Source: Macrostomum lignano
Lineage: Eukaryota
Reading direction: 5' to 3'
Assembly: GCA_002269645.1 (NCBI GenBank)
Contig: NIVC01001242.1
Span: forward strand, 1-64,000
Length of the DNA stretch: 64,000 nucleotides
Numbering within the stretch: the first letter of the stretch is position 1; every line of letters starts with the position of its first letter. The notes below the pieces were generated by a model. It saw only the letters and a program-made list of their open reading frames with translations. It ran no database searches and was not told the origin of the DNA. Positions 1 through 62,972 of this stretch are shown here, one piece after another. The position numbers and the translations under genes were made by a program.

Positions 1-34
1 AGGCAATGCGAACCAACCAACCTCACAAATGCAG

Positions 35-11486: not shown

Positions 11487-11548
11487 ATAATTTGGGAAAG
11501 AATCAAAACTTGCTGACGATACTCGCTAGTATCAATAGATACCAAAGA

Positions 11549-11760
11549 GCGCCAGCATCAGGGGCTTTAGCACCAGGGGCTTTAGCACCAGGGGCTTTAG
11601 CACCAGGGGCTTTAGCACCAGGGGCTTTAGCACCAGGGGCGCCAGCACCAGGGGCGCCAGCACCAGGGGCGCCAGCACCAGCGGCGCCAGCACCAGGGGC
11701 GCCAGCACCAGGGGCGCCAGCACCAGGGGCGCCAGCACCAGGGGCGCCAGCACCAGGGGC
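11549..11760 (-). repeat. 15-bp satellite (CCTGGTGCTGGCGCC / CCTGGTGCTAAAGCC), array 1
   Basis: Reverse orientation; AAAGCC variant on the left, GGCGCC variant on the right. Confidence 0.95.
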
Positions 11761-11777
11761 GACATGACATGACCGTT

Positions 11778-18832: not shown

Positions 18833-25682
<6,850 letters not shown>

Positions 25683-27195: not shown

Positions 27196-27967
27196 TGCTG
27201 GCGCCCCTGGTGCTGGCGCCCCTGGTGCTGGCGCCCCTGGTGCTGGCGCCCCTGGTGCTGGCGCCCCTGGTGCTGGCGCCCCTGGTGCTGGCGCCCCTGG
27301 TGCTGGCGCCCCTGGTGCTGGCGCCCCTGGTGCTGGCGCCCCTGGTGCTGGCGCCCCTGGTGCTGGCGCCCCTGGTGCTGGCGCCCCTGGTGCTGGCGCC
27401 CCTGGTGCTGGCGCCCCTGGTGCTGGCGCCCCTGGTGCTGGCGCCCCTGGTGCTGGCGCCCCTGGTGCTGGCGCCCCTGGTGCTGGCGCCCCTGGTGCTG
27501 GCGCCCCTGGTGCTGGCGCCCCTGGTGCTGGCGCCCCTGGTGCTGGCGCCCCTGGTGCTGGCGCCCCTGGTGCTGGCGCCCCTGGTGCTGGCGCCCCTGG
27601 TGCTGGCGCCCCTGGTGCTGGCGCCCCTGGTGCTGGCGCCCCTGGTGCTGGCGCCCCTGGTGCTGGCGCCCCTGGTGCTGGCGCCCCTGGTGCTGGCGCC
27701 CCTGGTGCTGGCGCCCCTGGTGCTGGCGCCCCTGGTGCTGGCGCCCCTGGTGCTGGCGCCCCTGGTGCTGGCGCCCCTGGTGCTGGCGCCCCTGGTGCTG
27801 GCGCCCCTGGTGCTGGCGCCCCTGGTGCTAAAGCCCCTGGTGCTAAAGCCCCTGGTGCTGGCGCCCCTGGTGCTGGCGCCCCTGGTGCTGGCGCCCCTGG
27901 TGCTAAAGCCCCTGGTGCTAAAGCCCCTGGTGCTAAAGCCCCTGGTGCTGGCGCCCCTGGTGCTAAA
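27196..27967 (+). repeat. 15-bp satellite, array 2
   Basis: GGCGCC units followed by AAAGCC units. Confidence 0.95.
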
Positions 27968-28973
27968 ATCTCTGGATCTAATAGTTGATTTTGAGCCGCT
28001 GTTCTGATCGTCAGCTTTTAATTTCTAGCAAATTTAGCCGCACATTAGCACTAGCTACTAAATTAACGCTGGACTAAGTGTTCAATGCAGGTACTCGAAA
28101 ATAAACTAAAAACTAAAAAACATACCAAAAATCGCTAATAGTTTTTCTAGGAATTATGTATGCAATTTATTGCAGTGGTATGTATTATTTACATTCATAA
28201 TATGAAGTCTTTAAGGGTAATATTCAACTTAATGAATACTTAAACAGTGAGTTACCTTTAGCTCGTAATACCATCGGTATTATTTAGGTTATCGTTAATC
28301 TCCTTAGTGCTGCAGCAAGACGCTGTCCTTATTGACAGGCAGGCAGGTAAAGTCTGCAGTTAAAGGTAAAGTATACGACTAAATTGGGTAGCCTTAAGCT
28401 CGCACAATACCCCCTTGAAAAGGGTACTCACTCAAAGCAATGCAATTTTCTACGCTTTATAAGAAAGACACATTGCTGCCCGAGAGCCTCTACACATGAG
28501 AGTGAAACGAAAAATGTACAGTTAGATTTTAGGATGTAGGATATGCTCAGCTTGAGTTTACTGTACATTCTCAGTCTCACGCTGAGATGTTTTGCTGAAA
28601 TTCTAAAAATACGGGCAGAGCTATTGTCTTGTGGGTTAATTGCATTTTGGCGAGATTCCGTCAGTAATATTTAAAGAGATGCGCAAACAAAAATTGTATT
28701 GTACAGCAAGTCCATCTGACCTAGTCTGTATGGTCACTGCTGCTTTTAATAAATTGCAGTGCGCTCGGATTCTATACGAATATTTGAACAAGGGACCTGG
28801 AAATTATCCACATCATGTGCAATTAGCTATTTTGTCCCAAGAAAGGGCAGTGCCACGCAATCGCATTAGCTCATTGGAGTAACAAAACTTGGTAACTGCA
28901 AATTGACCGATATGTAATCAGGTGCAGTAGATTGTCAGTAGACTGAAAACTGTCTGAATACCTGCTTAATTGT

Positions 28974-29684
28974 AGGGGCTTTAGCACCAGAAGCTTTAGC
29001 ACCAGAAGCTTTAGCACCAGGGGCTTTAGCACCAGGGGCTTTAGCACCAGGGGCTTTCGCACCAGGGGCTTTAGCACCAGGGGCTTTAGCACCAGGGGCT
29101 TTAGCACCAGGGGCTTTAGCACCAGGGGCTTTAGCACCAGGGGCTTTAGCACCAGGGGCTTTAGCACCAGGGGCTTTAGCACCAGGGGCTTTAGCACCAG
29201 GGGCGCCAGCACCAGGGGCTTTAGCACCAGGGGCTTTAGCACCAGGGGCTTTAGCACCAGGGGCTTTAGCACCAGGGGCTTTAGCACCAGGGGCTTTAGC
29301 ACCAGGGGCTTTAGCACCAGGGGCTTTAGCACCAGGGGCTTTAGCACCAGGGGCGCCAGCACCAGGGGCTTTAGCACCAGGGGCTTTAGCACCAGGGGCT
29401 TTAGCACCAGGGGCTTTAGCACCAGGGGCTTTAGCACCAGGGGCGCCAGCACCAGGGGCGCCAGCACCAGGGGCGCCAGCACCAGGGGCGCCAGCACCAG
29501 GGGCGCCAGCACCAGGGGCGCCAGCACCAGGGGCGCCAGCACCAGGGGCGCCAGCACCAGGGGCGCCAGCACCAGGGGCGCCAGCACCAGGGGCGCCAGC
29601 ACCAGGGGCGCCAGCACCAGGGGCGCCAGCACCAGGGGCGCCAGCACCAGGGGCGCCAGCACCAGGGGCGCCAGCACCAGGGGC
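28974..29684 (-). repeat. 15-bp satellite, array 3 (inverted relative to array 2)
   Basis: On the + strand, AAAGCC-type units come first, then GGCGCC-type units. Confidence 0.95.
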
Positions 29685-30540
29685 TTATCATTCTTGAGAA
29701 GGCATCAAAAGTTAATACTTTTACACAGAATGCCTTGAAAAATGTTTAAAAATGTTGAGAAAGCAATACCTATTAGCTGAATAATTCAGTATTTACTATA
29801 TATAAAATAGAAATTATATAAATTAGAAAATTGTCCACACAAGCACAGGGTAATCATCTTTAATTTTCCTCAATAACTCAGCCGGAACTCGCTCACCGAT
29901 AGACACTGGGCAAACTCAAATTCACCTGCTGCACGAACTACAGTACAAGCATTGTGCAATGGAGAAGTGGAAGCACATGCACCATTTTTAATTTTCTAAT
30001 TGTTCGTACTGATTTAAATTGATTAGTTCTCGCTTATCTATTCCAGGTATACCCGTATCTAGAAACTACTAGAGTTTTTATAGCGATTTTCATAACCAAT
30101 TTTATGCACTTCGATACAAATCGGTTCAAACCGTTTTTATAGAATATTGCAAAATCTGGCTGCTTTCCCTTCAAAATACGCATCATAGTTATTTTTGTGT
30201 CTTTTTATTCATTTATTTTTATTTCGTGCCTATTACAGTGCCAGTTATATGGTATTCAATTAATTTTTTAGTAAATTACATCGATATTGCTATATTCAGG
30301 TTGCGTTACTATCACCTAATCAACAACTTAGATCAAAGGGCTTTAGTTGTTCTTCGAAAAATGCAAAAGATAATCAATCACTACATGCTCAAAGCAGAAA
30401 TAAAAAATATGACTTTCAAATATTTAGTTTTTAAAGGGTTAGAATATAAAATAATGTCAATATTCGAATAAAATATATCGAAAAGCGCTATTTACACTAC
30501 TTTTCTCCTTTAAATATCACCTCTGACACCCCAATGAATG

Positions 30541-33285: not shown

Positions 33286-36200
33286 TCAGAAAAACACTTC
33301 TTGCGGAACGGGCGCCACACCGTCGTATCTCAGGTGTCCAACACGAACTCCTGTGGGCCCGTCCAGATCTAAGGTGGCCCAGTATGATTTACTAATCAGC
33401 TTCTCGGCTGCCAGTTTCTTGTGCCTCACGACAATAAAAATACCTGTTCATTACAAGAAATACAGGTGGCATGACGAAAAATTAAAAAAGCGAAAGCGAA
33501 CTTCGACTTACCAACAAACGCAGCGATGGCAGCAACTGCTGCGGCGCAACTACCAGCGATTAATGCCAGAGAAGCATTATTGCCTATCTCCTGCTTTGTT
33601 TGCTTTGCAGAATCTGCTTTGTTGCAGTTGGCACCGTGCCAGCCAGCTGAGCACTGGCATCTGCAAACATGGTGCGTGCGATTATACAGTTACTAAAATA
33701 TACACTGGAAGATGGATAAATTACCTACTACATGCATTAAAAAACTTACTTGTAACTATTAAGAAATGTATTCTTGCATGTTGCCCCATTCATGCATGGA
33801 GAGTCATACTCGCATACGCTCTCGTGGACAATGCCAGTGACAACACCAACAGATTCGGTGGCAATGATACCATTTGGCCAATCATCCACAGAGAAGTTTC
33901 TATTTAAATCTAGAATCAACGGCCACAGAGAGTTAACTCGAGGAGATGCAATTATTCCATGGAATGCAGTGATATTTGCAAGTCTCGACAGCAGCACACC
34001 AACAGATCTCCTTAATCTGCCCCGGTGGTTCAATGGTGGATCTGGAGCTGCCCGAAGACCGCTGAAGCCGCCAATGATGAGCTGGCCTGACAGCTGCGGC
34101 AGCGGACTCGCATGACTCAGCGATGCCGAACTGACTGAAGATGACACTGACAGCGACAGCGAGCGACCCGATATCGACACGGAGATCTTCACGGAGACGA
34201 AGCTGCCGGTGGCCACCGAGTCTGAGGACGTCAGCGCTGCGATGAGGGAGCCGTTTCCGTGCAGTAACTGGGCGGACAGATGGCCATCGTAATCAATCTG
34301 AAAATATTCAAGCAAAACCTAATGTAAAAACTATCTTGAAACCTACAAAGGAGTACCATTGTGCTCTTAAGGACACTAACCGTAGCGAGCAGTCTCGGAG
34401 TGGTCGCTGAGTCGCTCGGGTCGCCCAGCAGCAGCAGAAACGCTCCTCGAGACAAAGTCACCAGCCTCAGCTCAATCGTCCACGAGTCTCCGCCATACAC
34501 ACTTGACACACCTGCTGCAGATGCGAACATCGCTGATGACACGCTGCCGCCCACTCCCAGTGAGAACGATGGAAGCTCAACAGAGCAGTTTCGACCTCCG
34601 AAGTCCGCAGCGCAGTGGCACACAAAGTCGTTCCACACATCTGAGCACATCGAGCTCGTCTTTGCTTCACAAGGCGACAGACTTCCGCACTGCACCGACC
34701 GACTGCAGACTCCCCAGGTCGCGTTGCTCGACTCCGCCGTGGTCTCCGTGGCGACCAATGTCGGGTCGTTCGTCACGAGCCGCAGGTCTCTGACGCAGCC
34801 GCGGAAGCCGCCGTAGTCGTCGATGCCGGATCCGCTCTCGCCGCCGACACGAACTGACATTCGACTGTTCGACTTGAATGAGTCCGACAGTACGTCGACC
34901 AGCTGTGCTCCAGGCATCTGACTCACTCCTGACTCACTGCGACTCAATTTCGCACTGCCATTGGTCAGCGAGACCGACAGCGTCAGCCAATCAGTAGAGG
35001 CCAAGCTGTCACTGACTGGCCAAGCGGCTCGACCAATCACAGACGATGAGGCATTGAAGAACAACAGCACGAGACTGGAGTCGTGAGCGCCGACTCGGAT
35101 GTCTCCCCAGTGAGACGAGAGCCGGACCAGATCGAAGTGGGCGAGACTCGTGCGGAACGACAGCTCGAAGGTGCAGTCAGCTGTTGTGGTAAAATTGGCG
35201 CTGAAACTGGACGTCCCGCTGAATGACGCCAGAGTGGTCTCGTTGCACTGCGGTCCAGACCAGCCAGGCTTGCAGATGCAGCGATAGTTGTGAGCAGGTA
35301 ACGGCAGCTCGCCAAGAAGCAGCGGCTCGCAAGTAGCATTGTTCTGGCACGGGCTGGAGTCGCAGCCAGTCAGTCTGACGCTGCAGTTTTTGCCCCCGAT
35401 CTCAGCGGGGCAGCTGGTGCAGGCATAATCCGCTACCAGGTCCTTGCAGACGGCTCCGTTCTGACACGGCTGTCCGAATCGCTCGCACTCGTTGATGTCG
35501 ACTGAGCAGGTCGGGCCCTCGTAGCCGGGCAGGCAGTGGCAGGTGAATGAGGCCAGGCCGTCCGTGCAGCTCGACGCGTGAGCGCACACGCTGCGGTTGG
35601 TGGCTGGATCCAGACAGTCGTTCGGGTTGATCTCGCATTTGTCTCCGTAGGTACCTGTTGCAGCAAAAAAACAATAGGAGTGTTTGCTTTAGGTTAAAAT
35701 CTATAAGTATATCGATAATTTGATTTGCCGGACCTCCTCACCATGTGGACAGAGGCAGATGAACCCGGCTGCCAGTGTGTAGCTGAAGCTGCCGTTGAAA
35801 GGCGAAGGCAGCAATGAGTTTTTATACAGATCCTGTTTGCTGCGCTCTAGACAGGCGCCCTTATACTCGCACGGATTCGGCGAGCAGTCCGGCACGTCAA
35901 CTGAGCAGGTCTTTCCCGAGTAGCCGCTGAAGCAGCTGCAGCTGAAGTCTCTGTGCCCGTCAGTGCAGGTGGCGTTGTGGCTGCACGGGCTGCTGGCGCA
36001 GTCGTCAATGCGGCTCTGGCAGTTCGGTCCGTAGAAGTCGGTGGCAGAGCAGTCGCAGGTGAAGCTCCTGACACCGTCGTTGCATCTGCCGCCGTGGTGG
36101 CACGGGCTCGACGCGCAGTCATCGATCTTGGAGCTGCAGGTGTCGCCTTCGAAATCGACACGAGAGCAGTCGCAGGTGAACCTGAAAGGGAGAATTAAGG

Positions 36201-39719: not shown

Positions 39720-40082
39720 CTGTAGGTGAGTTGTAGAAGTCAGAAGAAACGGTTTACTCGAATCTAGCTACTCATGGAACCTACAACTAGCCAGCTGAAA
39801 TCACCTACGTATAGTGAGTTTTAAACATGGACAATACATTTAAATTATTATATGTTTTACAGCACGTTGTTCTTTACATTTTTAAGAATTCTGTAAGCCC
39901 GTGTAAATAAATAGATGAATATATAAATAGATTGGTGGAACTTAGTGGCCAGTAACTAAGTATTCTGACGGTATTAAGTGGTTATAAGTTACTAGAAGAT
40001 GCATTAGCTAAGTGAGGAGGAATCAGTGGTGCACGAAGAATTATTGATGGAAGGGAGGAGCCTGAAAGATGCGTTTGTGATC

Positions 40083-40920
40083 GCCTCTGTCTCTTGGTGG
40101 GCGCCCCTGTCTCTTGATAGGCGCTCCTGTCTCTTGATGGGCGCTCCTATCTCTTGATGGGCGCCCCTGTCTCTTGGTGGGCGCCCCTGTCTCTTGGTGG
40201 GCGCCCCTGTCTCTTGATAGGCGCTCCTGTCTCTTGATGGGCGCTCCTATCTCTTGATGGGCGCTCCTATCTCTTGATGGGCGCCCCTGTCTCTTGGTGG
40301 GCGCCCCTGTCTCTTGGTGGGCGCCCCTGTCTCTTGGTGGGCGCCCCTGTCTCTTGATAGGCGCTCCTGTCTCTTGATGGGCGCTCCTATCTCTTGATGG
40401 GCGCCCCTATCTCTTGATGGGCGCCCCTGTCTCTTGGTGGGCGCCCCTGTCTCTTGGTGGGCGCCCCTGTCTCTTGATAGGCGCTCCTGTCTCTTGATGG
40501 GCGCTCCTATCTCTTGATGGGCGCCCCTGTCTCTTGGTGGGCGCCCCTGTCTCTTGATAGGCGCTCCTGTCTCTTGATGGGCGCTCCTATCTCTTGATGG
40601 GCGCTCCTATCTCTTGATGGGCGCCCCTGTCTCTTGGTGGGCGCCCCTGTCTCTTGGTGGGCGCCCCTGTCTCTTGGTGGGCGCCCCTGTCTCTTGATAG
40701 GCGCTCCTGTCTCTTGATGGGCGCTCCTATCTCTTGATGGGCGCCCCTGTCTCTTGGTGGGCGCCCCTGTCTCTTGGTGGGCGCCCCTGTCTCTTGATAG
40801 GCGCTCCTGTCTCTTGATGGGCGCTCCTATCTCTTGATGGGCGCCCCTGTCTCTTGGTGGGCGCCCCTGTCTCTTGGTGGGCGCCCCTGTCTCTTGGTGG
40901 GTGCCCCTGTCTCTTGGTGG
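40083..40920. repeat. 20-bp minisatellite (CTCTTGGTGGGCGCCCCTGT)n with recurring variant order
   Basis: Direct reading; lies upstream of gene C. Confidence 0.95.
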
Positions 40921-42757: not shown

Positions 42758-43055
42758 AGTGCCTGCGTCGCTAAAATGAGTGCCAGCGGCGCTAAAATGA
42801 GTGCCAGCGGCGCTAAAATAAGTGCCAGCGGCGCTAAAATGAGTGCCTGCGGCGCTAAAATGAGTGCCTGCGGCGCTAAAATGAGTGCCTGCGGCGCTAA
42901 AATGAGTGCCTGCGGCGCTAAAATGAGTGCCTGCGGCGCTAAAATGAGTGCTTGCGGCGCTAAAATGAGTGCCTGCGGCGCTAAAATGAGTGCCTGTGGC
43001 GCTAAAATGAGTGCCTGCGGTGCTAAAATGAGTGCCTGCGGTGCTAAAATGAGCG
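42758..43055. repeat. 21-bp minisatellite (GGCGCTAAAATGAGTGCCTGC)n
   Basis: Direct reading. Confidence 0.9.
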
Positions 43056-43880: not shown

Positions 43881-46800
43881 TCAGAAAAACACCTCCTGTG
43901 GACACGGCGGCATTCCGTCCGGTCTCAGGTGTCCAACTCGAACACCGGTTGGACCGTTCAAGAAGAATCTGTCCCACGGGCTTCGATGCTTCACTTCGTG
44001 AGCTCGTCGGAGCTTCAGGAAAACAAGAATACCTGCAGGTGAAAATGAATTTAAACAAAATAACGAAGCCTCGCTCGTTAACTATGTAAAACAACGGACT
44101 CACCAATGCAGGCGCCAATGACAATGATCGTGGATGAAACAATTCCTGCAATCAATGCACTCGCACTTCTAGACGAGTCTTGTTTTGAATCCTTGTTGGA
44201 GTCCGGCTCAGAACACGTGGGACCGTGCCACCCAGCTGCGCACTCACACCTGCAACAGTTCGGACTCACGTGCGATGATAAATGACTATTTTATTAGCTA
44301 TTGCTAATAAACTTACCTATACGTGACAAAGAAAAAATTCCAACACGTAGCGTCATTCTGACAAGATTTTGAAGTCTCGCAACGAGTTTCAACTTTAGAG
44401 ATAAAGCGACTCCTACTGACTTGCTGGCAACAATTGTTCTTGGAAGCCTCTCGGTCCAAGTGGAATCGTTTTGTTTGAAGATCAACGGCCAAACTTCATT
44501 GATTCTGGGGGCAGATATAACACCTCGAAACGCAGAAATATTTGATGAAAGAAGCCGAGCAATGTCTGTTGGCAGTGCCGCCATGGATCGTCTCGATCGC
44601 CGGCTGGGATTAAACGATGGAGCCGGAGCTGGCTTGGCGCCGCTGAAGCCGCCGATGATGAGCTGGCCTGACAGCTGCGGCAGCGGACTCGCACTGCTCA
44701 GCGATGCCGACCTGACTGAAGATGACACTGACAGCGACAGCGAACGACCCGATATCGACACGGAGATCTTCACGGAGACGAAGCTTCCATTGGCCACCGA
44801 GTCTGGGGACGTCAGCCCTGCGATGATGGAGCCGTTGCCGTGCAGTAACTGGGCGGACAGACGGCCGGAGTAATCGATCTGAAAAATTCAAGTAAAACCA
44901 AACATAAAAATATCTTGAAACCTACAAAGGAGTACCATTACGCTCTTAAGAACACTGACCGTAGCGAGCAGTCTCGGAGTGGTCGCCGAGTCGTTCGGGT
45001 CGCCCAGCAGCAGCAGAAACGCTCCTCGAGACAAAGTCACCAGCCTCAGCTCAATCGTCCACGAGTCTCCGCCATACACACTTGACACACCTGCTGCAGA
45101 CGCGAAGATCGCTGATGACACGTTGCCGCCCACACCCAGTGAGAACGATGGAAGCTCAACAGAGCAGTTTCGACCTCCGAAGTCCGCAGCGCAGTGGCAC
45201 ACAAAGTCGTTCCACACATCTGAGCACATCGAGCTCGTCTTTGCTTCACAAGGCGACGGGCTGCCGCACTGCACCGACCGACTGCAGACTCCCCAGGTCG
45301 CGTTGCTCGACTCCGCCGTGGTCTCCGTGGCGACCAATTTCGAGTCGTTCGTCACGAGCCGCAGGTCTCTCACGCAGCCGCGGAAGCCACCGCCGTCGAT
45401 GCCGGATCCGCTCTCGCCGCCGACACGAACTGACATTCGACTGTTCGGCTTGAATGAGTCCGACAGTCCGTCGACCAGCTGTGCTCGAGGCATCTGACTC
45501 ACTCCTGACTCACTGCGACTCAATGTCGCACTGCCATTGGTCAGCGATACCGACAGCGTCAGCCAATCAGTAGAGGCCAAGCTGTCGCTGATTGGCCAAG
45601 CGACTCGACCAATCACAGACGATGAGGAATTGAAGAACAACAGCACGAGACTGGAGTCGTGAGCGCCGACTCGGATGTCTCCCCAGTGAGACGAGAGCCG
45701 GACCAGGTCGAAGTGGGCGAGAGTCGTGCGGAACGACAGCTCGAAAGTGCAGTCAGCTGTTGTGGTGAAATTGGCGCTGAAACTGGACGTCCCGCTGAAT
45801 GAAACTAGAGTGGTCTCGTTGCACTTCGGTCCAGACCAGCCAGGCTTGCAGGTGCAGCGATGTCCGTGAGCAGGTGACGGCAGCTCCTGAAGAAGCAGCG
45901 CCTCGCAAGTAGCATTGTTCTGGCACGGGCTGGAGTCGCAGCCAGTCAGTCTGACGCTGCAGTTTTTGCCTCCGAACTCAGCGGGGCAGCCGGTGCAGGC
46001 ATAATCCGCTACCAGGTCCTTGCAGACGGCTCCGTTCTGACAAGGCACTCGCTCGCACTCGTCGATGTCGACTGAGCAGATCGGGCCCTCGTAGCCGGGC
46101 AGGCAGTGGCAGGTGAATGAGGCCAGGCCGTCCGTACAGTTTGACGCGTGAGCGCACACGCTGCGGTTGGTGTCCGGTTTCAGACAGTCGTTCGGGTTGA
46201 TGGAGCACGTGTCTCCGTAGGCTCCTGTTAAAAAGTATTTTGCAAGTGGTAATAGCTGGCAGAGCTATTAGTGACCCCGATTTGTGTAACTTTCCTCTTA
46301 TTAGCTCCGAGCGTAGTATTTTTTGGGTGTTCTAGCTCGTATGCTTACTAGTGAATTTTTTTTTATTAGCATATACGACAGAAAAGAGGTTTTGAAATAT
46401 TTTACTTTGGTAGTTTTCAGTAGAAGCCAATAATTTAACGTGATCTACGAAGACCTTTTGCTGAAAGTCTGACCAAATCTTGGGTTCAAACAGACTAAAT
46501 ATATGAAACTCTGTGATTTTCAAGGAAAAGCATTACCGTAGGCAAAGTATGCAAAATTCGATGCTATAAAGTTGGATGCAGAGCCGTTTTGCAGCAGCGA
46601 AATTGATGATAATTTAGCGATTTAGCGAATGGTACAATGACTGTACCTAAGGTAGTTTGTTAATACAGTATTTGGGTCGTTTCAGCTTTTGGGAATTTTA
46701 AATTACGATAATAATTTCTAGTCTAAAAAGTTTATTTTTCTCAACTTAAGTCTTAATTTTGCTAGTTTTAAAGACGGCAATTTTTTTTGTTTAACACATC

Positions 46801-50633: not shown

Positions 50634-51311
50634 AAATAAGCAATATTTCTATTCACGCAAAAATTCTCCTCAATTAGTCGAGTATAATGTACTCGTGCTT
50701 AGTGCTATTTAGTTTGATCAACTTAAATTTTACCGACAGAAGTTACTTTAGTAACTTTTGGCATCTTAAATTTGTCAGCTAAATTGACAATGTCTGGCAT
50801 TTCTTATGAATATACTTCATGACTTTATCAGTTGATGAACGTCGATGAGTAAAGTGTGATCTCTGTTGTCGCATCTGTGCATTTCGATGTGTTTGTGTAA
50901 TTTATAGTTAAGGTTATAATATGCTGCAGTTTGAATCCTTAAAGCGAGTATAAAAAACCCGACTTTTCTTTGGTAACTAAGATGACAGTTGTAATTTAGG
51001 CGAAAAGCTGCAGTTACTGTTTTGCCAACAAAGCTGTAAATAATGTACGCTTTCTCATACTGAGAAGCTTCAGAAAAACAGCAAATTACAATATTTCGCG
51101 TGGTAAATTTATGCAACCTCTTTGTCCGCTTGTGGCAAAGAGTTGCTACCAGGTACTAGTAATACGTAAGTATGAGATGCGGAAAAAATGAAAACAAATC
51201 ATTGCTACGAAACAGTTGATACTTTTGTAAACTTAATCAAATGTGACCACAGACAAAGAAAAAAAACCAAGAGGTAAATCTTTTATACAAACGTTTGACC
51301 AGGTATTGATA

Positions 51312-51582
51312 TACTCAGCAACATTGAAAAGTCCCCATCATGGAAGATTCCTTCCGCGGTCGCCACTTTTGAGAGAGCAGGTAAAGTCTCAATCTTTGCG
51401 AGTAACGCAACTTGCTACGCCTCGGCAGACTTGAGTTGAGGAATGAAGTGGGGGAGCGGTGTGCGAGGGTTGGACGGATTGAAGCTACCCCGGTTAGTTT
51501 TCTCGTAACTTTTATTTCAGAATAGTCCAAGAGAAATTTCTCACTGGAGCACAGAGTTGCGACTTTTCAATGTTGCTGAGTA
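51312..51582. mobile_element. TA-flanked MITE, copy 2
   Basis: TIR TACTCAGCAACATTGAAAAGTC, TA TSD, internal sequence homologous to 873-1113. Confidence 0.8.
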
Positions 51583-51585
51583 TAT

Positions 51586-54500
51586 TTAATCATCTCTGCT
51601 CACTGAATTTTGGGGTAATTCTTCCGCATTATTTGTGCCTTTGATATCCACATACACGATATCCGGTTTCGCATATGATTCGGCGCTAGTTTCCCCATCA
51701 GGGTTAAATAGCTCCACTCTGGGCCTCGGTTTTGGCGCCTGTTGACCCGGCTGTGAATCATCTTGCCAACCGCTGTTTGTCGCTGCTTCAGCAGGAGTCT
51801 GAACTATATCGGCCACCTAGTGAATTAAGCGTGTATCGTTCGTTTAGTTTGCTTATGTATTCTTTGCAAATGACTCAATACTGTTAAAGAATAAGCAAAT
51901 GTCACTAACATTTTGTCCAGACGATCCGATATAGTCATATTCTCCGGTGACAATTGTACTTTCCTGTGTAGGAAACGGATTATAAATTCATAAAGTATTC
52001 AATGAACGCTACAATAATTTTTTATCAATAAAATAACAGCACATTGGGCGGAAGTCATACGTGTTGTCGGTCAGCAACCGCATAAGTTGAATCAGGCAGT
52101 CTGCCTAACTCAGTTGCCTCGGGTGCTGTGCGCCCCGCCTCCACCAGTCTCTGTCATATAATAAAACATTAAAGGAAACAACGCCATGTGGTTAAAATTC
52201 ATTAGAATAATGCTGACTACTGATATAAGAGCGAATGAGAGAGAGAGGGACGTTGCCAGGCTGAAATATTTGCGCCCTTTTTCCAGCAACCGTGGCGCCA
52301 CTGTTACCCATTTTAGCGTTCCCTAACAATTACTTTGGCAATGGCGCCCCTGGTGCTGGCGCCCCTGGTGCTGGCGCCCCTGGTGCTGGCGCCCCTGGTG
52401 CTGGCGCCCCTGGTGCTGGCGCCCCTGGTGCTGGCGCCCCTGGTGCTGGCGCCCCTGGTGCTGGCGCCCCTGGTGCTGGCGCCCCTGGTGCTGGCGCCCC
52501 TGGTGCTGGCGCCCCTGGTGCTGGCGCCCCTGGTGCTGGCGCCCCTGGTGCTGGCGCCCCTGGTGCTGGCGCCCCTTGTGCTGGCGCCCCTGGTGCTGGC
52601 GCCCCTGGTGCTGGCGCCCCTGGTGCTGGCGCCCCTGGTGCTGGCGCCCCTGGTGCTGGCGCCCCTGGTGCTGGCGCCCCTGGTGCTGGCGCCCCTGGTG
52701 CTGGCGCCCCTGGTGCTGGCGCCCCTGGTGCTGGCGCCCCTGGTGCTGGCGCCCCTGGTGCTGGCGCCCCTGGTGCTGGCGCCCCTGGTGCTGGCGCCCC
52801 TGGTGCTGGCGCCCCTGGTGCTGGCGCCCCTGGTGCTGGCGCCCCTGGTGCTGGCGCCCCTGGTGCTGGCGCCCCTGGTGCTGGCGCCCCTGGTGCTGGC
52901 GCCCCTGGTGCTGGCGCCCCTGGTGCTGGCGCCCCTGGTGCTGGCGCCCCTGGTGCTGGCGCCCCTGGTGCTGGCGCCCCTGGTGCTGGCGCCCCTGGTG
53001 CTGGCGCCCCTGGTGCTGGCGCCCCTGGTGCTGGCGCCCCTGGTGCTGGCGCCCCTGGTGCTGGCGCCCCTGGTGCTGGCGCCCCTGGTGCTGGCGCCCC
53101 TGGTGCTGGCGCCCCTGGTGCTGGCGCCCCTGGTGCTGGCGCCCCTGGTGCTGGCGCCCCTGGTGCTGGCGCCCCTGGTGCTGGCGCCCCTGGTGCTGGC
53201 GCCCCTGGTGCTGGCGCCCCTGGTGCTGGCGCCCCTGGTGCTGCGCGCCCTGGTGCTGGCGCCCCTGGTGCTGGCGCCCCTGGTGCTGGCGCCCCTGGTG
53301 CTGGCGCCCCTGGTGCTGGCGCCCCTGGTGCTGGCGCCCCTGGTGCTGGCGCCCCTGGTGCTGGCGCCCCTGGTGCTGGCGCCCCTGGTGCTGGCGCCCC
53401 TGGTGCTGGCGCCCCTGGTGCTGGCGCCCCTGGTGCTGGCGCCCCTGGTGCTGGCGCCCCTGGTGCTGGCGCCCCTGGTGCTGGCGCCCCTGGTGCTTGC
53501 GCCCCTGGTGCTTGCGCCCCTGGTGCTTGCGCCCCTGGTGCTTGCGCCCCTGGTGCTTGCGCCCCTGGTGCTAAAGCCCCTGGTGCTTGCGCCCCTGGTG
53601 CTAAAGCCCCTGGTGCTTGCGCCCCTGGTGCTAAAGCCCCTGGTGCTAAAGCCCCTGGTGCTAAAGCCCCTGGTGCTAAAGCCCCTGGTGCTAAAGCCCC
53701 TGGTGCTAAAGCCCCTGGTGCTAAAGCCCCTGGTGCTAAAGCCCCTGGTGCTAAAGCCCCTGGTGCTTGCGCCCCTGGTGCTTGCGCCCCTGGTGCTTGC
53801 GCCCCTGGTGCTTGCGCCCCTGGTGCTAAAGCCCCTGGTGCTAAAGTCCCTGGTGCTAAAGCCCCTGGTGCTAAAGCCCCTGGTGCTAAAGCCCCTGGTG
53901 CTAAAGCCCCTGGTGCTAAAGCCCCTGGTGCTAAAGCCCCTGGTGCTAAAGCCCCTGGTGCTTGCGCCCCTGGTGCTAAAGCCCCTGGTGCTAAAGCCCC
54001 TGGTGCTAAAGCCCCTGGTGCTAAAGCCCCTGGTGCTAAAGCCCCTGGTGCTAAAGCCCCTGGTGCTAAAGCCCCTGGTGCTAAAGCCCCTGGTGCTAAA
54101 GCCCCTGGTGCTAAAGCCCCTGGTGCTAAAGCCCCTGGTGCTAAAGCCCCTGGTGCTAAAGCCCCTGGTGCTAAAGCCCCTGGTGCTAAAGCCCCTGGTG
54201 CTAAAGCCCCTGGTGCTAAAGCCCCTTGTGCTAAAGCCCCTGGTGCTAAAGCCCCTGGTGCTAAAGCCCCTGGTGCTAAAGCACCTGGTGCTAAAGCCCC
54301 TGGTGATAAAGACTCGCTAAAATCCAGCCCCATCAATCGAAGTTCACAGTTTCGAGTGGCTCATGGGAAATCGTAAAAAAACATAAAATAAAATCTTTGC
54401 TAACATTTTTATTCCAACACCGATTTCTAAATTTAGGCCATGCGAACAACGACGCGAGGACAGCAGATATAGAAAAAATTGCTAAGATGGCGATAAATAC

Positions 54501-57500
54501 GTATTTCAATGCAGATAGTGAGCCTTCTGTTACTTGCGTCGCGGCGGAACCTTGTAAGGAGTGAAAAATAGAGTGGGAGACAGTACTGAAATTAATATAA
54601 AAATGATTCATCGCTCAAAATTCTGTATGGGATAATAAAGTTTGTGCAAGAAAATTGTATATGGACTAATAAAGTTCTGATAGGTGTGAAATCTACACGT
54701 ACATAGCATACTAAACATTTGAGAATAATTGTTTTGAACAATATCGTATTGCGAACCAAGCTAATGACTCGCACGAATTTCTCAAGAAAAACAAGTTTAC
54801 CCTCTGCCTGCTTACTGTTTCAAAGGCACACTAAGAAGGTACCACCACAGTGCAACATAATGATAAACAACAATCATTGGACTGTGTTTAGGCAGTAAGA
54901 AGTCAGTACTGCAGTAAAACTAAAGTAGAGAAGAGGGTTAGGCATTATACTACTTTTCTGAGACTAAAACCAGTCGTTCATTATCGTTGGAGAATAAAGA
55001 GAAGAGCAGGAGAAAGCAGTTAGAGAGAAGAGCCTATTTGTAAGGGACATGGCTTGGGTTTGCAAAACTGCTATACAAAAATAGAAATGAGATAATAGCA
55101 TGCAATGGCTCATGCAGAAAAAGGCGTACTTGTGAATCGTGATTCTTCACAGCCAGGTAAACACACAGAGCCGGACGCACGCGAAAAGCTAAACGAACTG
55201 TTGAAGGGCGATGGAAGGTCCGAACTGTTGTACAATGAGGCGTTGCTTTTTTCGAAACAGCAGAAACCTTCTCCGCAAGGATTGAGGTCGCAGTCCGGAA
55301 TGTCCTTGGAGCAGTCCTTGCCGTGGTAGCCCGAATGACATTCGCAGCTAAAAGTTGGGAGTACATGTATGTAGCTCGTACCAGTGGGTTACTCAGCCAT
55401 ATACTTTATTCACGATCGAAACATGCAGAAAGGCAACACCAGCGAACTTACACAAAATTGTTGTAGAAAATATCGTGACACGTCGCTCCGTTCTCACAAG
55501 GCTTGAAACGCTCGCAGACTTTTTCGGCCAGTTTTCCAAGAACCACATTTGTTGAGCCGCTCGGTTTAATTGCTCCAGGAAAACTTTCTTGTAGCGTTGC
55601 TGCTGGGGAGCTGAGAAGTAAAGCTGTGATTCCATTGATCCTGGTCGAGCCAATAATACCTCGAAATGCAGTAACATTGGCTACAGATGAAGATAAATTA
55701 GGATCCCAAACGGATCTTCTTGATCTGTCATTGCGGCTCAAAGGCGGAGCCGATGCTGCCGTGGCACCGTTAAAACCGCCGATGATGAGCTGGCCTGACA
55801 GCTGCGGCAGCGGACTCGCACTGCTCAGCGATGCCGACCTGACTGAAGATGACACTGACAGCGACAGCGAGCGACCCGATATAGACACAGAGATCTTCAC
55901 GGAGACGAAGCTGCCGGTAGCCACCGAGTCTGAGGACGTCAGCGCTGCGATATCGGAGCCGTTGCTGTGCAGTAACTGGGCGGACAGACGGCCAGAACGA
56001 TCGATCTGAAAAGATTTTAACAAACTGAAAGATCGCACTAAATCCAGAAAAAAGAACCATTAAGGACACTGACCGTAGCGAGCAGTCTCGGAGTGGTCGC
56101 CGAGTCGCTCGGGTCGCCCAGCAGCAGCAGAAACGCTCCTCGAGACAAAGTCACCAGCCTCAGCTCAATCGTCCACGAGTCTCCGCCAGACACACTTGAC
56201 GCATTTGGCAGAGAAGCGAAACTCGCAGACGATACAAGTCCGCTTATGCCGAACGAGTACTGTGGAAGCAGCACGGAGCAGTTTTTGCCTCCGAAGTGAG
56301 CGGGGCAGCCGGTGCAGGCATAATCCGCTACCAGGTCCTTGCAGACGTCTCCGTTCTGACACGGCTGTCCGAACCGCTCGCACTCGTTGATGTCGACTGA
56401 GCAGGTCGGGCCCTCGTAGCCGGGCAGGCAGTCGCAGGTGAAACTCCTGACACCATCGGTGCACCCGCCGCCGTGCTGGCACGGGCTCGACGCGCAGTCC
56501 TCGATCTTGGAACTGCAGGTGTCGCCTTGGAAGTCAACGCGAGAGCAGTCACAGGTGTATCTGTAAGTTTTGAAACCAGTTAGCTACAAATACATTTTGG
56601 TTACAGTTTGGTTTTGTACCAACTAGAATCACGCAACTTACGTTGAGTTTCCGTCCTTACAGACGCCGCCATTCCGGCAGGGCTTTGACAGGCAGTAGTC
56701 CGTATCTACGGAGCAGTTTGTGCCCTCCCAGCCTGTGAAGCAGGTGCAGCTGTAGTTTTGCACCAGGTCAATGCAAAGGCCATTGATGCAGGGCTGGTCA
56801 TAACACTCATTTATTTTGTTCTCACACCAGTCCCCAGTAAACCCTGTATCTGTGCAGTCGCAGGTGTATTTCTGACTTCATCGATACACTTCCCTTCGTT
56901 CTGACAGGGACTTGACAGACAGTTATCAATCCACGAGCTACAGGTTGAGTCTTGAAAGTCGATGCTGGTGCAATCGCAGCTAAATCTGCAGCATTTTTGT
57001 TGCATAAAATGAATCAATAATTGCAGCAGGGGAGGCTAAGAAATCTGTAGTAGCTCTGCAAAAGTTGTAGCTTTTTTTACTGTGTGGCGTTGGAAAACAT
57101 AAGGCTTTGTTCATCTACTTTTCAAGTAAAGAAACATTTTTTCAACATTTTAGCACTTTATATTACGCTAAAATTAAAAAAATCTAATGTAATTATAATT
57201 CCTAGATATGCTCAGAGCCACTCACGTGGAGTTTCCGTCGCTGCAGACGCCACCGTTCTGACAGGGCCCTGACAGGCAGTAGTCGGTGTCCACTGAACAG
57301 TTCTTGCCCTCCCAGCCTGTGAAGCAGCTGCAGCTGTAGTCTTTCACCAGGTCCGTGCACAGGCCGTTGGCGCAGGGCTTGCTGGCGCAGTCATCAATGT
57401 TGACCTCGCATCTGGAGCCATTGAATCCCGTGTCAGAACAGTTGCAGGTGAATCTGTCGAGGATACACACATTTCGGTATATTTTTTGTAGGTTTAAGAA

Positions 57501-60500
57501 AGCTTTGACTGTATCTGCAGTTATTTGTTGCAACCATCAGAGTAATGGTAAATGTTGCAAAATTTAGAAAGCCTATGTGCAAAAAGAACCTTAGAAAAAT
57601 TATCTCGATAAATTAATTTTATGAGCATATCTGTTCACCTACGTTTCATTGCCATCAAGACAGCGGCCGTCATTGAGACAGGCGCCGTAGAAACAGTTAT
57701 TGTGATCGACGTTGCAGTTCCTGCCTTGCCAGCCTCGGTAGCAGCTGCAGCTGTAGTCATTCACCAAGTCTGAGCACAGCCCGTTTATACATGGGTGACT
57801 TGCGCAGTTGTTGATGTCGATTTCGCAGTGTCTGCCTAGTTTTTTTTAATTAAAAGTACAAGCATTCGTTAGGCATTTAACAAGATTGCTGCTTATTGTT
57901 ATCACTTGGATTCAACAGTGGGTGGCAACGAGACGCCCATGACTTTTATCAGGAGTATCAGAGCGGTAGCCATAGTGACCCTTTTGGGAGTCATGGCTGA
58001 TTTAGTAAGCAATGCTACCTACAGGAAAATCCGCAGTGAGAAATACCAATTCTGCCTTTCAGGTGGTGAGAATGTGGAGTCTTTCATCTATGGCTGCCCC
58101 ACCTTTACTCGGGACAGGCTCGCCTACATCGGCTAAAATCCGGATGCTTTCGACGATTGTAAAGATAGTAATTTGCTATGTCCTACAGGCGGTATGGACT
58201 GTCCTGGAATGTCCCATGTCCTACAGGCGGTATGGACTGTCCTGGAATGTCCCATGTCCTACAGGCGGTATGGACTGTCCTGGAATGTCCCATGTCCTAC
58301 AGGCGGTATGGACTGTCCTGGAATGTCCCATGTCCTACAGGCGGTATGGACTGTCCTGGAATGTCCCATGTCCTACAGGCGGTATGTCCTGCAGGCTCGT
58401 TCACAACCGGCGCGAAAAGCCATCCACCTGCTGAACTCTCCGAATGGGACTGCGCTGCTGACACCGGCACCACAGGATCTCCCTGCGTGACGGCGCCGCA
58501 CTAGCGGTGGCAGGTGAGTCAAGATGATCAATAATAAAATTCTATGCAATTTACAGCCATCGATTCCAGTTTTGGCTCATAAAAACTTACCTTCAAACCC
58601 GGTCACACAAATGCAGGAGTAGTTCGAGCTGCCAACTTTGCTCGTGCAGGTGCCCCGTTTTGACATTTGAGTCCGTAAAGACTTGGGTCGCAGGGTGCCG
58701 GCTCCAGGCCAGCAGCAAGAACAAACGGATATTGGTTAAAGGCCAGCAAGAAAAAAAGACACCATGCAAATCACCTGCAATTTTAAATGAAGAAAAATCT
58801 AAGAAGTTAAAGCGCGTGATAATGTTTAAATTATATATTTTCCTATCCGAGTACAGTTACTTCTGTTTCTAATACATCAAATGTTATTTGAATGCTGGGT
58901 TTTTAGAAGATCAAAAACTTTTTAATTTGATTTGTTTAAATAACTTTAATTAACTAATTGTGATTAATATAGCTATGAAGCTTTTTTGCCTGGGCCTGAA
59001 ATTTATAGCCCTAAATTCACGGAGCGGAATTATTAAACCAATGTATTCTCTGAAAAAGTAAGGACACAAATTCTATGTCGAAAATATTCACCTTTTCCAT
59101 GTTTCTTCTCAGTGTCATTGACTTGTTTATGCCTCAGACTAAGCAGAATATCCACTAATAAATAGAAGCAGGTTAAAAAAGAATACTTGCCTAACTAGAA
59201 ACATTACAACTTGAAATGAGGTACAATAATATTTTTATACCTTCTTCAGTATGACTCTGATCTTTTTATGAAACAGAGATTCTGCTTATAAGAACATGGG
59301 TTCACTAGTGTACACTGTAGAAAACGCCACTGTACGCTGCACGGAAATTCCATGGAAATTCCGTAGACATTTGGGTATGAAATTTTTTGCATACACAGAC
59401 TATGTACTGTGTATCTATGTACTGTGTACTGTGAAAGGATTCGAAAGGAAAACAATCAGAACATTGAGTTTAACTGCTGCTGCGCGAATGCCGTCGTGGC
59501 TGGCTTTTGTGGTGACTCCAACCGGGCAGTTAACAACAAATATTTTACAAGGGTGAGAATTGACTTTTTACTCGTAGCTTTTCCGTATTTTAATTTTAAA
59601 GCGATGGCTTGGATTACGGGGAGGGAAAAATGAAAACAAATCGTCAGAGCTGGAGGAATTCTGAGAGTTGATTGATGACGCATCTGAGAGGATGGAATGG
59701 TCTTGTGAGTTGGTGGATGAGCTCTGTAAGATGGTGGATGGGATCTGTGAGATGGTGGATGAGATCAGTGAGGTGGCTGATTGTATGGAATGACATTGGT
59801 TTTCTGAGCCAGACAATCAGATAAGATTAGGCCATTTTTCCGAAGCGATTTTTAGCTTTGGTACAAGCCTACTCGTATTATGTTTTTTTGATATATATTT
59901 TGATTAAATTTCACGAAAAAAATATTTTAGTTAAAATAATTTTAGACAGCCTTTACTGTTTAATTAAGTTAAGCTGTTTCAATTTTACAAAGTGATGTAA
60001 CCACGCTCTGGTCGCGGGATAGGGCATGGGAACTTTTTCGAAAGTGCCTCCTATCCCGTGCACCCTCTGCACAGAGCTGTCGAGACTCGGCCAGGTCTCC
60101 GCCCAGGCCTGGAGACTCCCGCTCTGCTGCACCCCTCCTACTGCCTTGGTTCCGTCTCCCCTGCCGCCACACCTGCCTTTCCGGAGCTCCCCACCCCTCT
60201 CTGTACCTCCCCTCTACCCTATCTCTTCTGCCTCCCACCCTATTCTTCTTGTACTTTCCCTTTCCCCCCTCTTTTTGTCTCTCTCTGCACTCTTTTCCTG
60301 CGCTGTCCCCTCTTTCCCTGTGTCTACTTACAGTACTTTGTGTGCTCACCGTCTCCCCATCCCCTCTCAAACTCCCAAACGGTGACGCAAGTCGTGTGAC
60401 CCCTTCTCCCCCTCGGTGACTCATCGATGACTCACCCCTCTCTCTTGCGCAACCTTTTCTCACGCTATTGTTCTCCTTCCCAAATTTCTCATGTGACACC

Positions 60501-61267: not shown

Positions 61268-62972
61268 AGCTGCCGGTAAGTTCCTGTTACTAATTTGTGC
61301 TCCAATTGCCTTTGCTTATCCGGGGTTTGCCTATTTTCCATTGTCTGATTAGAGAGCTGAGCCAATTGTGATACCGCATCTTTTGCTGTATTTTACTCAA
61401 TAGTGAAGCCGCCTAATTGCCTGATTATTCGCCTAAGGGCCTAATTATTAACTATTAACTAACTTCATCATTATTCAATCTTTCACCATCATTTAACTCA
61501 TGGCTTGCTAAGCCTTTCTCCCGGGGTGGCAAAGCATAAGGAGTTTGGGTAAGCTAATGGCCTCTCCCCGTGCAAAGCCCGCCTGTGAGTGCGTGCTGCG
61601 GGGCCGCGTGTGCGTGCAGTAGAGGGATTAGCGAGTCTTGGCACAGAATGGCAGTAGGAAGGTTGCACCCCCATGCTAACGTGTCCCTTCGCCCTGAGCA
61701 ATCTAAACTGGAGACAGTACATGTTCGCCTCATACTACTCTTAGTAATCAAAGTCGCAAGTCAGCCTCGCTCACAGCCACAAAGGATCCCCTGCTGAGAA
61801 ATCCTCCAGGATTGAGCCCAGAGTTCCCGATCATGCCCCAAGCAGAGTCCCTGAACTCGGCTGCATGCGTCTCCCCTGTTAGCCTAAATCCCCTGGTAAC
61901 CAATCCAGGCGGGGCTCTAGCCTCGAGAGGTCTGGTAGAAAGATCCAGGTGCGCCAGGTCACATAGAGTGGTGGCAGCCACTCGGTCATACCATGACCGA
62001 GTGACCAACTATTGCACCTTGGCTACAGGTGGGGTCCATGTGGGTCCTTGGCCCTCTGGTCACGAAGCGCTACCAAAGCTACTAATCATGTGGGCGGGAC
62101 AGTCTGGTGCTGGAGGTCCGTCAGGTCATTGCCCGGTCATAGGCAGCCTACGGTCATTGCCCCTCTAGCCAAGTGTTCGTCTCTCAATAGGAGCGGACAG
62201 GCGACAAGGGCGGTTACATCAAAAGCTATTTTGATATTACTAGGTTTTTTAATTTTTAAAGTTTTTCATTTTGATTTACAGCGGGTCACCCACCTGTGTA
62301 GCCGTAAACGCAGCTGCAGTGATACCAGGGGCTCGCGTCTGTGTTGCTGCAGGTGCCTCCGTTTTGGCAGGGATTGCTTGATGAAGTGCTGCCATCGGAG
62401 GTTGTAGCACAAAAGTTTATTCTAACAGTGCAATATGTACCAGTGTACGCCTCAGTGCACAGACACGGAGGAGTGCTTGACGTCACAGGACCCGGCCAGC
62501 AAGTCCCGCCATTCTTGCAGTCGCCCTCGCTGCAGGCGGCTCGCCTCGTCCGCGCCAATTCGTTGGCGTCCTCGTCAGAACCTTCATATTGAAAATCAGT
62601 GGTGGAAAAATTATATTCATAAAGCTAAAGTTATTAACAGGCATTTAAGCGTGAGAAGAATAATTACTATTGGCAACAGAATTTTCATGAATTCATAACA
62701 CCTAAATATCATAACATCATTCCATAACATTTAAATTTCATAACGTCTAAACTTCAACTGTGTTGGGAATCGTTAATGAAAATCCTAATTTCCTGTAACG
62801 GCAAGTTCATTGGCGGTAAAATGAAAAAAACCTTTTCTTCATGCGAACTTGGCTTACCTGAACCTCCTATCGCTTCATTTACACACAAAATTGACGATAA
62901 ACCGATCATAATTAGCATCCTTATGATTTTTTGCCTCGGATTAACCCGCTGCTGAAGCACTCCAGATGTCAT
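51586..62972 (-). CDS. Crumbs-derived EGF/LamG receptor E with tyrosine-motif cytoplasmic tail (867 aa if the frameshifted cassette exon is skipped)
   Basis: Exons 62858-62972 (signal peptide), 62294-62581, 57643-57835, 57226-57453, [56642-56985, phase 2-2, -1 frameshift at 56869-56871], 56074-56560, 55452-56005, 55130-55347, 54405-54550 ([30 protein letters not shown]), 52061-52150, 51910-51963, 51586-51816. Without the bracketed exon the total is 2604 nt in frame. The tail exons were linked by splice-site and phase logic only. Confidence 0.7.
52342..54311 (+). repeat. 15-bp satellite, array 4, inside an intron of gene E
   Basis: About 2 kb; GGCGCC, then TTGCGCC, then AAAGCC variants. Confidence 0.95.
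58010..58510 (+). mobile_element. Same LINE family fragment in gene E, containing a 38-bp tandem expansion
   Basis: [23 protein letters not shown]; unit TGTCCTACAGGCGGTATGGACTGTCCTGGAATGTCCCA x5.5 at 58179-58386. Confidence 0.65.
58591..58765 (-). pseudogene. Signal-peptide plus single-EGF exon (possible alternative first exon of gene E) with two compensating homopolymer indels
   Basis: Conceptual translation [58 protein letters not shown](G) needs -1 in the A-run 58751-58757 and +1 in the C-run 58653-58656. As written there is a TAA at 58736-58738. Phase-1 GTAAGT donor follows. Confidence 0.55.
59993..62221 (+). mobile_element. Probable solo LTR (2229 bp) in an intron of gene E
   Basis: Termini TGATGTAACC...GGTTACATCA (TG..CA, 10-bp inverted), 4-bp TSD AAAG at 59989-59992 and 62222-62225, TATAAAA at 60924-60930, (CT)n tract near 61233-61262, no long ORF. 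Confidence 0.7.

Follow-up and report, generated by a model that had tools for sequence, protein, structure and literature searches.

Crumbs of the fly has an ectodomain with about 30 EGF repeats. It also contains four laminin-G (LamG) domains, and its tail of 37 amino acids (aa) carries a FERM-binding motif and ERLI (PMC3564977). A gene derived from Crumbs, here called gene E, was followed in the flatworm Macrostomum lignano, on the minus strand of contig NIVC01001242.1 (assembly GCA_002269645.1). It occupies about 62.9–51.6 kb of the stretch analysed (positions 1 to 64,000 of the contig, 64,000 nucleotides (nt), referred to below as the window). The evidence moderately favours the reading that gene E is a tandem Crumbs-derived paralogue in which the ordinary Crumbs tail has been swapped for a tyrosine-bearing tail of 124 aa.

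Gene E resembles Crumbs in being a predicted type-I membrane protein with EGF and laminin-G domains, in having a LamG that aligns with Crumbs LamG2 and includes an RxRRS loop, and in an EGF repeat with the insert '...RSNQxLY...PFNGSFSY..AAG'. It is also the neighbour of a true Crumbs gene (gene A). The two differ in domain number, gene E having a single LamG and some 12 EGF repeats against four and about 30 in Crumbs, and in the position of an intron, which follows the transmembrane (TM) segment in gene E and lies inside it in genes A and D. They differ again in the tail. The 37-aa Crumbs tail with its juxtamembrane FERM-binding motif is replaced by one of 124 aa, in which a segment that by eye is like GTYSPSRQE lies about 30 residues from the membrane, and the C-terminal ERLI (...PPPEERLI in gene A) is replaced by ...NSVSRDD. 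Of three molecular features of a Crumbs protein, gene E retains the EGF and laminin-G type-I architecture, though with one LamG only, and fails in the other two, both of which concern the tail.

Draper, CED-1 and MEGF10 are EGF-repeat receptors with tyrosine tails that use NPxY and immunoreceptor tyrosine-based activation motifs (ITAM, YxxL/I x6-12 YxxL/I). Gene E is like them in combining an EGF ectodomain with a tyrosine-motif tail, but it has neither NPxY nor ITAM and no sequence relationship to them. In nephrin, YDxV sites are bound by the SH2 domain of Nck when phosphorylated (PMC11247170). Nephrin and gene E share an adhesion-type ectodomain, a tail free of Pfam families and Y-D-x-(aliphatic) sites, of which members of the Macrostomum family have one or two. 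Nephrin has three YDxV sites and an Ig/FnIII ectodomain, whereas gene E has a single YDYI, with Ile, and the likeness is a lead taken from sequence pattern only.

The TM exon and tail exons

The membrane and tail part of gene E consists of four minus-strand exons. They had been placed by an earlier note on this DNA, made from its letters alone, and they are confirmed, with the translations given there, AG/GT borders and correct phases. The TM exon (54405–54550) begins with two bases that complete the codon opened in the preceding EGF exon (phase-1 donor at 55130), encodes a hydrophobic stretch followed by PKFRNR, and ends ...NRCWNKN at a phase-0 donor (AAT|GTTAGC). Tail exons t1 (52061–52150, 30 aa) and t2 (51910–51963, 18 aa) are both in phase 0; t1 fits one motif of the family described below, Y-x-x-x-D-[RQ]-[RQ], and t2 contains EYDYI, which fits another, Y-D-x-I. 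The terminal exon t3 (51586–51816) encodes 76 aa, including ESYAKP and IVYVDI, and ends in a TAA stop at 51588–51586; it is the weakest part of the model. Joined together, the four exons are open over 172 codons. The tyrosine motifs listed in the earlier note (STYAV, EYDYI, ESYAK and IVYVDI) are all present.

The introns between t1 and t2 (97 nt) and between t2 and t3 (93 nt) are short, and that between the TM exon and t1 measures 2.25 kb. A satellite had been noted between the TM exon and the tail, and a 15-bp array is indeed found there (52342–54305, 130.9 copies). An intron of this kind is no obstacle in itself, since the annotated gene A is joined across a 2.8-kb, satellite-packed intron at its TM segment.

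Open reading frames (ORFs) bounded by AG/GT pairs do not by themselves exceed chance, and the window has many ORFs of 76 codons. A splice-site matrix was trained on 25 introns of the family and scored against decoy GTs and AGs. The tail donors fall at the 91st–96th percentile of decoy GTs, and the acceptors of t1 and t2 at the 99th and 87th percentile of decoy AGs, respectively. The tail has few hydrophobic residues, and a Pfam search of it found no family.

Kinship with the tails of annotated paralogues

Gene E was compared with three M. lignano proteins: P0001 (BOX15_Mlig022007g1), P0003 (BOX15_Mlig017317g1) and P0007 (UniRef A0A1I8G109). The exons of P0001 and P0003 were mapped exactly on their loci. 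Both have a LamG, a Crumbs-type EGF and a TM end as in gene E, the end of the ectodomain being common to all three, and both have tyrosine-rich tails. Their TM exons end in phase 0 directly after the basic stop-transfer residues (..NRHRN| in P0001, ..RYRS| in P0003), as does that of gene E, and their tails are built from phase-0 exons of 11–49 aa separated by introns mostly of 84–106 nt. The same layout is found in gene E: a TM exon that ends in phase 0, small phase-0 exons and, within the tail, introns in the range of about 85–105 nt.

The likeness extends to sequence. By BLASTP, gene E ..|ESTIV..EYDYI aligns with EHTYLTSDRRP|EISTV..APYDVI of P0001 (E=0.19), and the t1|t2 junction of gene E and the junction DRRP|EISTV of P0001 fall at the same aligned residue position, both in phase 0. 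The t1 segment aligns with PSSGYLVADQRDSS of P0007 (E=0.06), and the counterpart of the YDxI site in P0003 is DYDRI. Gene E thus carries the order found in the family: Y-x-x-x-D-[RQ]-[RQ], a phase-0 intron, then Y-D-x-I. When a profile of the three paralogue tails was used, the gene E tail was outscored by only 22 of 2000 shuffles. Among shuffles of the gene E tail, Y...D[RQ][RQ] occurred in 0.6%, YD.I in 1.5% and both together in a fraction of 7e-5, a figure that is approximate, the patterns being post hoc.

Outside these elements the tails are unalignable, with 15–19% identity. The last tail exon, t3 (ESYAKP, IVYVDI), has no clear counterpart and shows loose similarity only to the last exons of the paralogues (AES.YA). 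Gene E differs from the three proteins also in having no annotated model and in being frameshifted. Variation within the family could be seen in five copies of the P0001-type tail, in which every tyrosine motif is unchanged, against 14 variable sites among the 119 positions that follow the TM exon. A profile of four tails, used in a protein search, retrieved only close copies of the P0001 tail.

Exon layout, motifs, intron position, and the profile and shuffle tests combine to indicate that t1 and t2 share descent with genuine tail exons found in the family, and both are very probably real coding exons, at least ancestrally; t3 is less secure in this respect. Judged by its sequence, the tail of gene E is of the type common to P0001, P0003 and P0007, with the conserved elements T-Y-x-x-x-D-[RQ]-[RQ], an intron and Y-D-x-I. 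The earlier claim of a Crumbs ectodomain fused to a tyrosine-bearing tail therefore finds support at the level of the family, for the homologous phase-0 mini-exon tails, their motifs and one intron position. Conservation of the tyrosine motifs, which the earlier note had proposed as a check, was followed in these paralogues: the elements kept are TYxxxD[RQ][RQ] and YDxI, and IVYVDI is not kept.

The ectodomain

The upstream exons of gene E were defined with P0002 as guide, and all lie on the minus strand. Exon 2 (62294–62581; acceptor ttgaag|GT, phase 1) encodes two EGF-like repeats and is collinear with P0002. Exons 3 (57643–57835) and 4 (57226–57453), placed with P0002 and by comparison between genes, encode further EGF repeats, and exon 5 (56642–56985) encodes three more. 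Exon 6 (56074–56560) contains EGF repeats and the first half of the laminin-G domain (Pfam Laminin_G_2); exon 7 (55452–56005) contains its second half, including an RSRRS loop, together with the start of an EGF repeat, and aligns with LamG2 of the true Crumbs protein P0021. The membrane-proximal EGF, with the Crumbs-typical insert, is encoded by exon 8 (55130–55347), whose phase-1 donor at 55130 leads into the TM exon. The whole ectodomain comprises about 12 EGF repeats, a single laminin-G domain and a Crumbs-type membrane-proximal EGF. Pfam detects nine EGF domains, one hEGF and a borderline Laminin_G_2 (23.1 bits, cut-off 22.9).

The LamG alone matches the second laminin-G of P0021 with E=2e-4, the RxRRS loop included. 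In an exhaustive HMMER search, the nearest matches outside the family over LamG and EGF were true Crumbs proteins of 2000–2250 aa, which end ...RATRGTYSPSRQE...PPEERLI (GTYSPSRQE...PPEERLI). A further protein search, with the part of gene E from LamG to tail, retrieved M. lignano proteins only, and a sequence search of the PDB with gene E gave generic EGF matches only. Descent from Crumbs is indicated in two ways, by the position of gene E in an array beside gene A and by Crumbs proteins as the nearest outside matches. The Crumbs ectodomain proposed in the earlier note is borne out on the same grounds, and in the evolutionary sense the ectodomain of gene E is, as far as its sequence goes, a shortened Crumbs.

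The basic loop inside the second laminin-G is kept as RSRRS in gene E (55700–55730, minus strand) and as RVRRS in P0021 (around residues 1340–1345). In its pattern of residues the loop is shaped like a cleavage site of the furin type.

Integrity and coding status of gene E

Several results weigh against the reading of gene E as a tail-swapped Crumbs paralogue. The t3 acceptor (TTCACTAG|G) is weak, scoring no higher than the 62nd percentile among decoy AGs. In synonymous-codon usage the tail, at -0.22 per codon, scores like non-coding DNA (null -0.20 +/- 0.13), in a test of low power that the P0003 tail, one of two annotated control tails, and the TM exon of gene E fail as well. The TM exon and tail found no match in a word-indexed set of 5.8 billion protein sequences, including the M. 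lignano gene models, and in an exhaustive HMMER search a query that spanned LamG through tail gave no alignment beyond the TM segment (about query residue 375). The pairwise similarities between tails (E=0.19, 0.98 and 0.06) are individually non-significant, and the motif patterns were defined after the sequences had been seen. A hidden Markov model (HMM) of four Crumbs tails did not score above shuffles on the gene E tail or on any tail of the family. In the upstream part of the gene, the exon 5 frame as assembled stops after ...GVRTK through a frameshift, the ancestral exon 1 is decayed, and its possible replacement, which is supported by its form and has no homology, has candidate status only.

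By eye, the t1 segment of gene E and SSGYLVADQRDSS of P0007 resemble the GTYSPSRQE of Crumbs, and P0007 also has ...PPTPTDEGIDL, an echo of ...PPPEERLI. The tyrosine-type tails may have arisen from the original Crumbs tail, with P0007 looking like an intermediate, an idea that the Crumbs-tail HMM does not support. The more specific proposal that TYxxxDRQ descends from the FERM motif GTYxPSxxE, attractive by eye, was set aside as unproven, the same HMM scoring no family tail above shuffles.

The lesion in exon 5 is small. The exon has 344 nt where 345 are needed, owing to a 1-nt deletion in an A-run (56871–56869), with CIDEVRN and YTCDC in different frames. One added base gives an open coding sequence (CDS) of 964 codons, and all the other exons of gene E are open and collinear. 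Exon 5 is symmetric, so that skipping it would also keep the frame.

At the 5' end, the ancestral exon 1 (62617–62688, minus strand, ATG at 62688) has lost its 3' part and donor by comparison with gene B. The ORF from 62688 was rejected as a working exon 1, since a stop closes it and it lacks a donor in phase 1. A scan upstream of exon 2 for an ATG, a hydrophobic stretch and a phase-1 GT found an uncertain candidate replacement (62858–62918, minus strand), with the donor CAG|GTAAGC in phase 1 and in frame with exon 2.

The ratio of nonsynonymous to synonymous substitution (dN/dS) is 0.20 for exon 3 (gene E versus B) and 0.25 for exon 4 (gene E versus B and C), which indicates that gene E was constrained through most of its history. 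For exon 6, which is nearly identical between copies (dS 0.04), the ratio is 0.85, based on 18 differences only. The last part of the UniRef model P0009 (A0A1I8JA97) is exon 2 of gene E, 100% identical and entered at the same acceptor; the locus thus exists in an annotated assembly, where its 3' half was never modelled.

These observations bear on the strongest alternative, that gene E is a decaying duplicate, a pseudogene in which the tail exons are genuine relics and from which no full-length protein is made today. We regard this as a serious possibility, though rather unlikely. It would account for the premature stop that follows the frameshift in exon 5, for the loss of the 3' part and donor of the ancestral exon 1, and for the absence of the 3' half from both annotated protein sets, even though one UniRef model includes exon 2. 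The exon 6 ratio, the non-coding-like codon usage of the tail and a transposon-like element that adjoins the stop codon point the same way. Against decay, the lesion is the only one in 2.9 kb of CDS and lies within a homopolymer run, where it would be typical of a long-read assembly error; the other exons and the 172-codon TM and tail frame have stayed open; exons 3 and 4 have low dN/dS; the symmetric exon 5 can be skipped in frame; and there is a plausible candidate for exon 1 with a consensus donor. Gene E may therefore have been recently inactivated, be rescued by skipping of exon 5, or be mis-assembled.

An EGF-like piece split over two frames (58580–58770, minus strand) lies within the 4.4-kb second intron of gene E, adjoining a perfect tandem repeat (38 bp x 5.5, at 58178–58386). 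It represents the relic of an exon, or else a frameshifted exon that escaped recognition.

Function of the tail

The tail of gene E is probably a string of short linear docking motifs. Ranked first is the possibility that YDxI, in which Asp at +1 and Ile at +3 are strictly kept, would serve as a phosphotyrosine site for SH2 domains, of the kind in which nephrin YDxV recruits Nck. Gene E has one YDxI site only, with Ile and not Val at +3, and its resemblance to Nck sites is one of pattern; both points count against this assignment. More broadly, though with a lower probability, Macrostomum may possess a small family of Crumbs-type receptors, tandem duplicates that keep the EGF/LamG ectodomain and in which the ultra-conserved polarity tail, with its FERM and PDZ binding, has been replaced by exon-shuffled tyrosine docking tails (TYxxxDRR, YDxI, YxN and, in gene E, IVYVDI). 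Extracellular interactions of Crumbs type would then be linked to SH2 signalling and not to the Stardust/Par-6 polarity complex.

The main functional rival is that the tail is real and its tyrosine motifs work without phosphorylation, being YxxPhi signals for sorting or endocytosis and recognised by the mu subunit of clathrin adaptors, which would make gene E a trafficking or endocytic receptor. The same sites do fit: YDYI and YVDI of gene E conform to Y-x-x-[LIMFV], as do YDVI, present twice in P0001, and YDRI in P0003. YxxPhi signals need an accessible site, and those of gene E stand far from the membrane in a Pfam-free stretch of low hydrophobicity. Two or more matches, however, arise in 16% of shuffles, and TYxxxD[RQ][RQ] fits no YxxPhi signal. 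Asp at +1 is no requirement for clathrin-adaptor binding. The invariant Asp seen here is instead characteristic of nephrin, in its SH2-binding YDxV sites (PMC11247170). A sorting role is, on this balance, unlikely, and SH2 docking is the function we prefer for YDxI.

The tail is the most conserved and functionally best-defined part of Crumbs, and paralogues with another tail would be natural 'domain-swap' experiments, showing what the ectodomain can do once uncoupled from polarity. If the tail tyrosines are phosphorylated, gene E and its relatives would also show how a flatworm has built a phosphotyrosine receptor out of phase-0 mini-exons. As matters stand, and with one exon frameshifted, gene E is a lineage-specific family variant in a highly duplicated genome, of practical value mainly for the annotation of the M. 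lignano Crumbs cluster.

Less probable readings of the 3' end

A stop at 54333, named in the earlier note as an alternative end, does exist in the TM-exon frame. If the TM-exon donor were not used, the protein would end there, 23 residues past the TM exon, and t1 to t3 would be chance ORFs. The donor (GTTAGC) scores low among the true donors of the family (20th percentile), the acceptor of t3 is weak, and an intron of 2.25 kb is long for a family whose introns are mostly below 110 nt; the tail, moreover, occurs in no database protein and its codon usage is not coding-like. Yet in P0001 and P0003 the corresponding point, just behind the stop-transfer residues, is a splice site in phase 0, and the motifs of t1 and t2, their order and the intron position are common to the family tails, at a joint frequency in shuffles of about 7e-5. 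The intron would measure about 290 nt if the satellite were removed, and gene A splices a satellite-filled intron at its TM segment. The peptide that runs to 54333 has no relative either. We consider this ending quite improbable, and retain the spliced tail.

The earlier note had also seen IVYVDI as an immunoreceptor tyrosine-based inhibitory motif (ITIM), and gene E as an inhibitory receptor. The motif does fit (I/V/L/S)xYxx(I/V/L), SH2 domains of the SHP2 type favour residues such as its Val (+1) and Ile (+3), and a fitting site is found in P0001 (SAYDVI); going by its consensus, the gene E-specific IVYVDI could bind a domain of this type. When the tail is shuffled with its composition preserved, however, an ITIM-type match turns up in 13.7% of cases, about one in seven, so that IVYVDI carries little weight. 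The inhibitory role, with recruitment of a SHP2/Corkscrew-type phosphatase, is not borne out and is very improbable: the match is at chance level, it lies in the least supported exon (t3), has no aligned counterpart in P0001 (the site there is unaligned with it), P0003 or P0007, and belongs to a protein with no evident paired activating receptor and with an ectodomain unlike the Ig or lectin kinds that ITIM receptors usually carry.

The Crumbs-derived gene cluster

Mapping of the gene E ectodomain pieces placed five to six Crumbs-derived paralogues in tandem in the window. Gene A, a bona fide Crumbs, is on the plus strand (7–9463). Its TM exon, which ends at 6518 (in the segment 6350–6518), is followed by the 2.8-kb intron with two satellites, and its last exon (9320–9463; coding 9320–9460, stop 9461–9463) encodes a GTY...PPPEERLI tail. 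This exon is 100% identical to the M. lignano protein P0102, ending ...GTYGPSKAE...PPPEERLI, which indicates that gene A is a real Crumbs from which genes B to E were derived. By sequence, gene A is the true Crumbs orthologue of M. lignano and genes B to E are its tandem derivatives.

Genes B (25.6–18.8 kb, last exon 18836–18991), C (39.3–33.3 kb, last exon 33289–33444) and D (48.9–43.9 kb, last exon 43884–44033) lie on the minus strand, as does gene E. The exons of gene B match P0004 (UniRef A0A1I8FWN0) at 99–100%. The three genes have a common type of last exon, ending ...PQEVFF. Judged by eye, it resembles a Crumbs tail that has diverged (TG.RV....PP.P.E), with EVFF in the place of ERLI and no GTY motif left; the HMM of four Crumbs tails gave no score above shuffles even for these tails. 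When the tail exons of gene E were compared with the window by tblastn, only self matches were found and no paralogous tail in the cluster. A LamG fragment at 11522–11201 (minus strand), with 81–89% identity to the laminin-G of gene E, adjoins a short array of the 15-bp satellite and is probably a remnant of another paralogue.

A literature search on Macrostomum and Crumbs found nothing relevant to a Macrostomum Crumbs-like family. Several of the public M. lignano models of this family (P0002, P0006, P0007 and P0009) are chimeras of adjacent paralogues: P0009 represents an upstream Crumbs-like gene that runs into exon 2 of gene E, and P0006 strings several copies together. Phase-0 tail exons are skipped differently between models, two in P0006 and P0087 and one in P0153 and P0154. 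The UniRef names of the family models (Cubilin, Delta-like, Calsyntenin-1, LAMTOR1) are automatic and misleading.

Satellites and a MITE-like element

The 15-bp satellite of the TM–t1 intron, with its variants CACCAGGGGCGCCAG and CACCAGGGGCTTTAG, occurs at four sites in the window (52342–54305, 27196–27964, 28974–29686 and 11549–11761). In gene E the minus strand passes first through the GCTTTAG variant and then through GCGCCAG, and the variants stand in the same order at two of the four sites. The flanks of the arrays at 27196–29686 and 11549–11761 show no homology, and the proposal that these arrays mark decayed 3' ends of E-like genes was rejected on that ground. The array in gene E is open in all minus-strand frames and was considered as a coding (PGAPA)n exon. 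This was also rejected: the same arrays lie between genes without flank homology, and the frame of the TM exon meets its stop at 54333, ahead of the array.

The two satellites in the TM intron of gene A are a 15/105-bp array at 6544–7116 and a 21-bp array at 7478–9196. Further satellites lie at 21670–22194, 24281–25060, 40082–40920 and 42758–43053.

Directly after the stop codon of gene E lies an element of 277 bp (51309–51585) that resembles a miniature inverted-repeat transposable element (MITE), with 25-bp terminal inverted repeats (ATATACTCAGCAACATTGAAAAGTC) and an AATAAA at 51516–51511 on the minus strand. A second copy, of 247 bp, is found within an intron of gene A (870–1116). Both copies probably carry TA target duplications.

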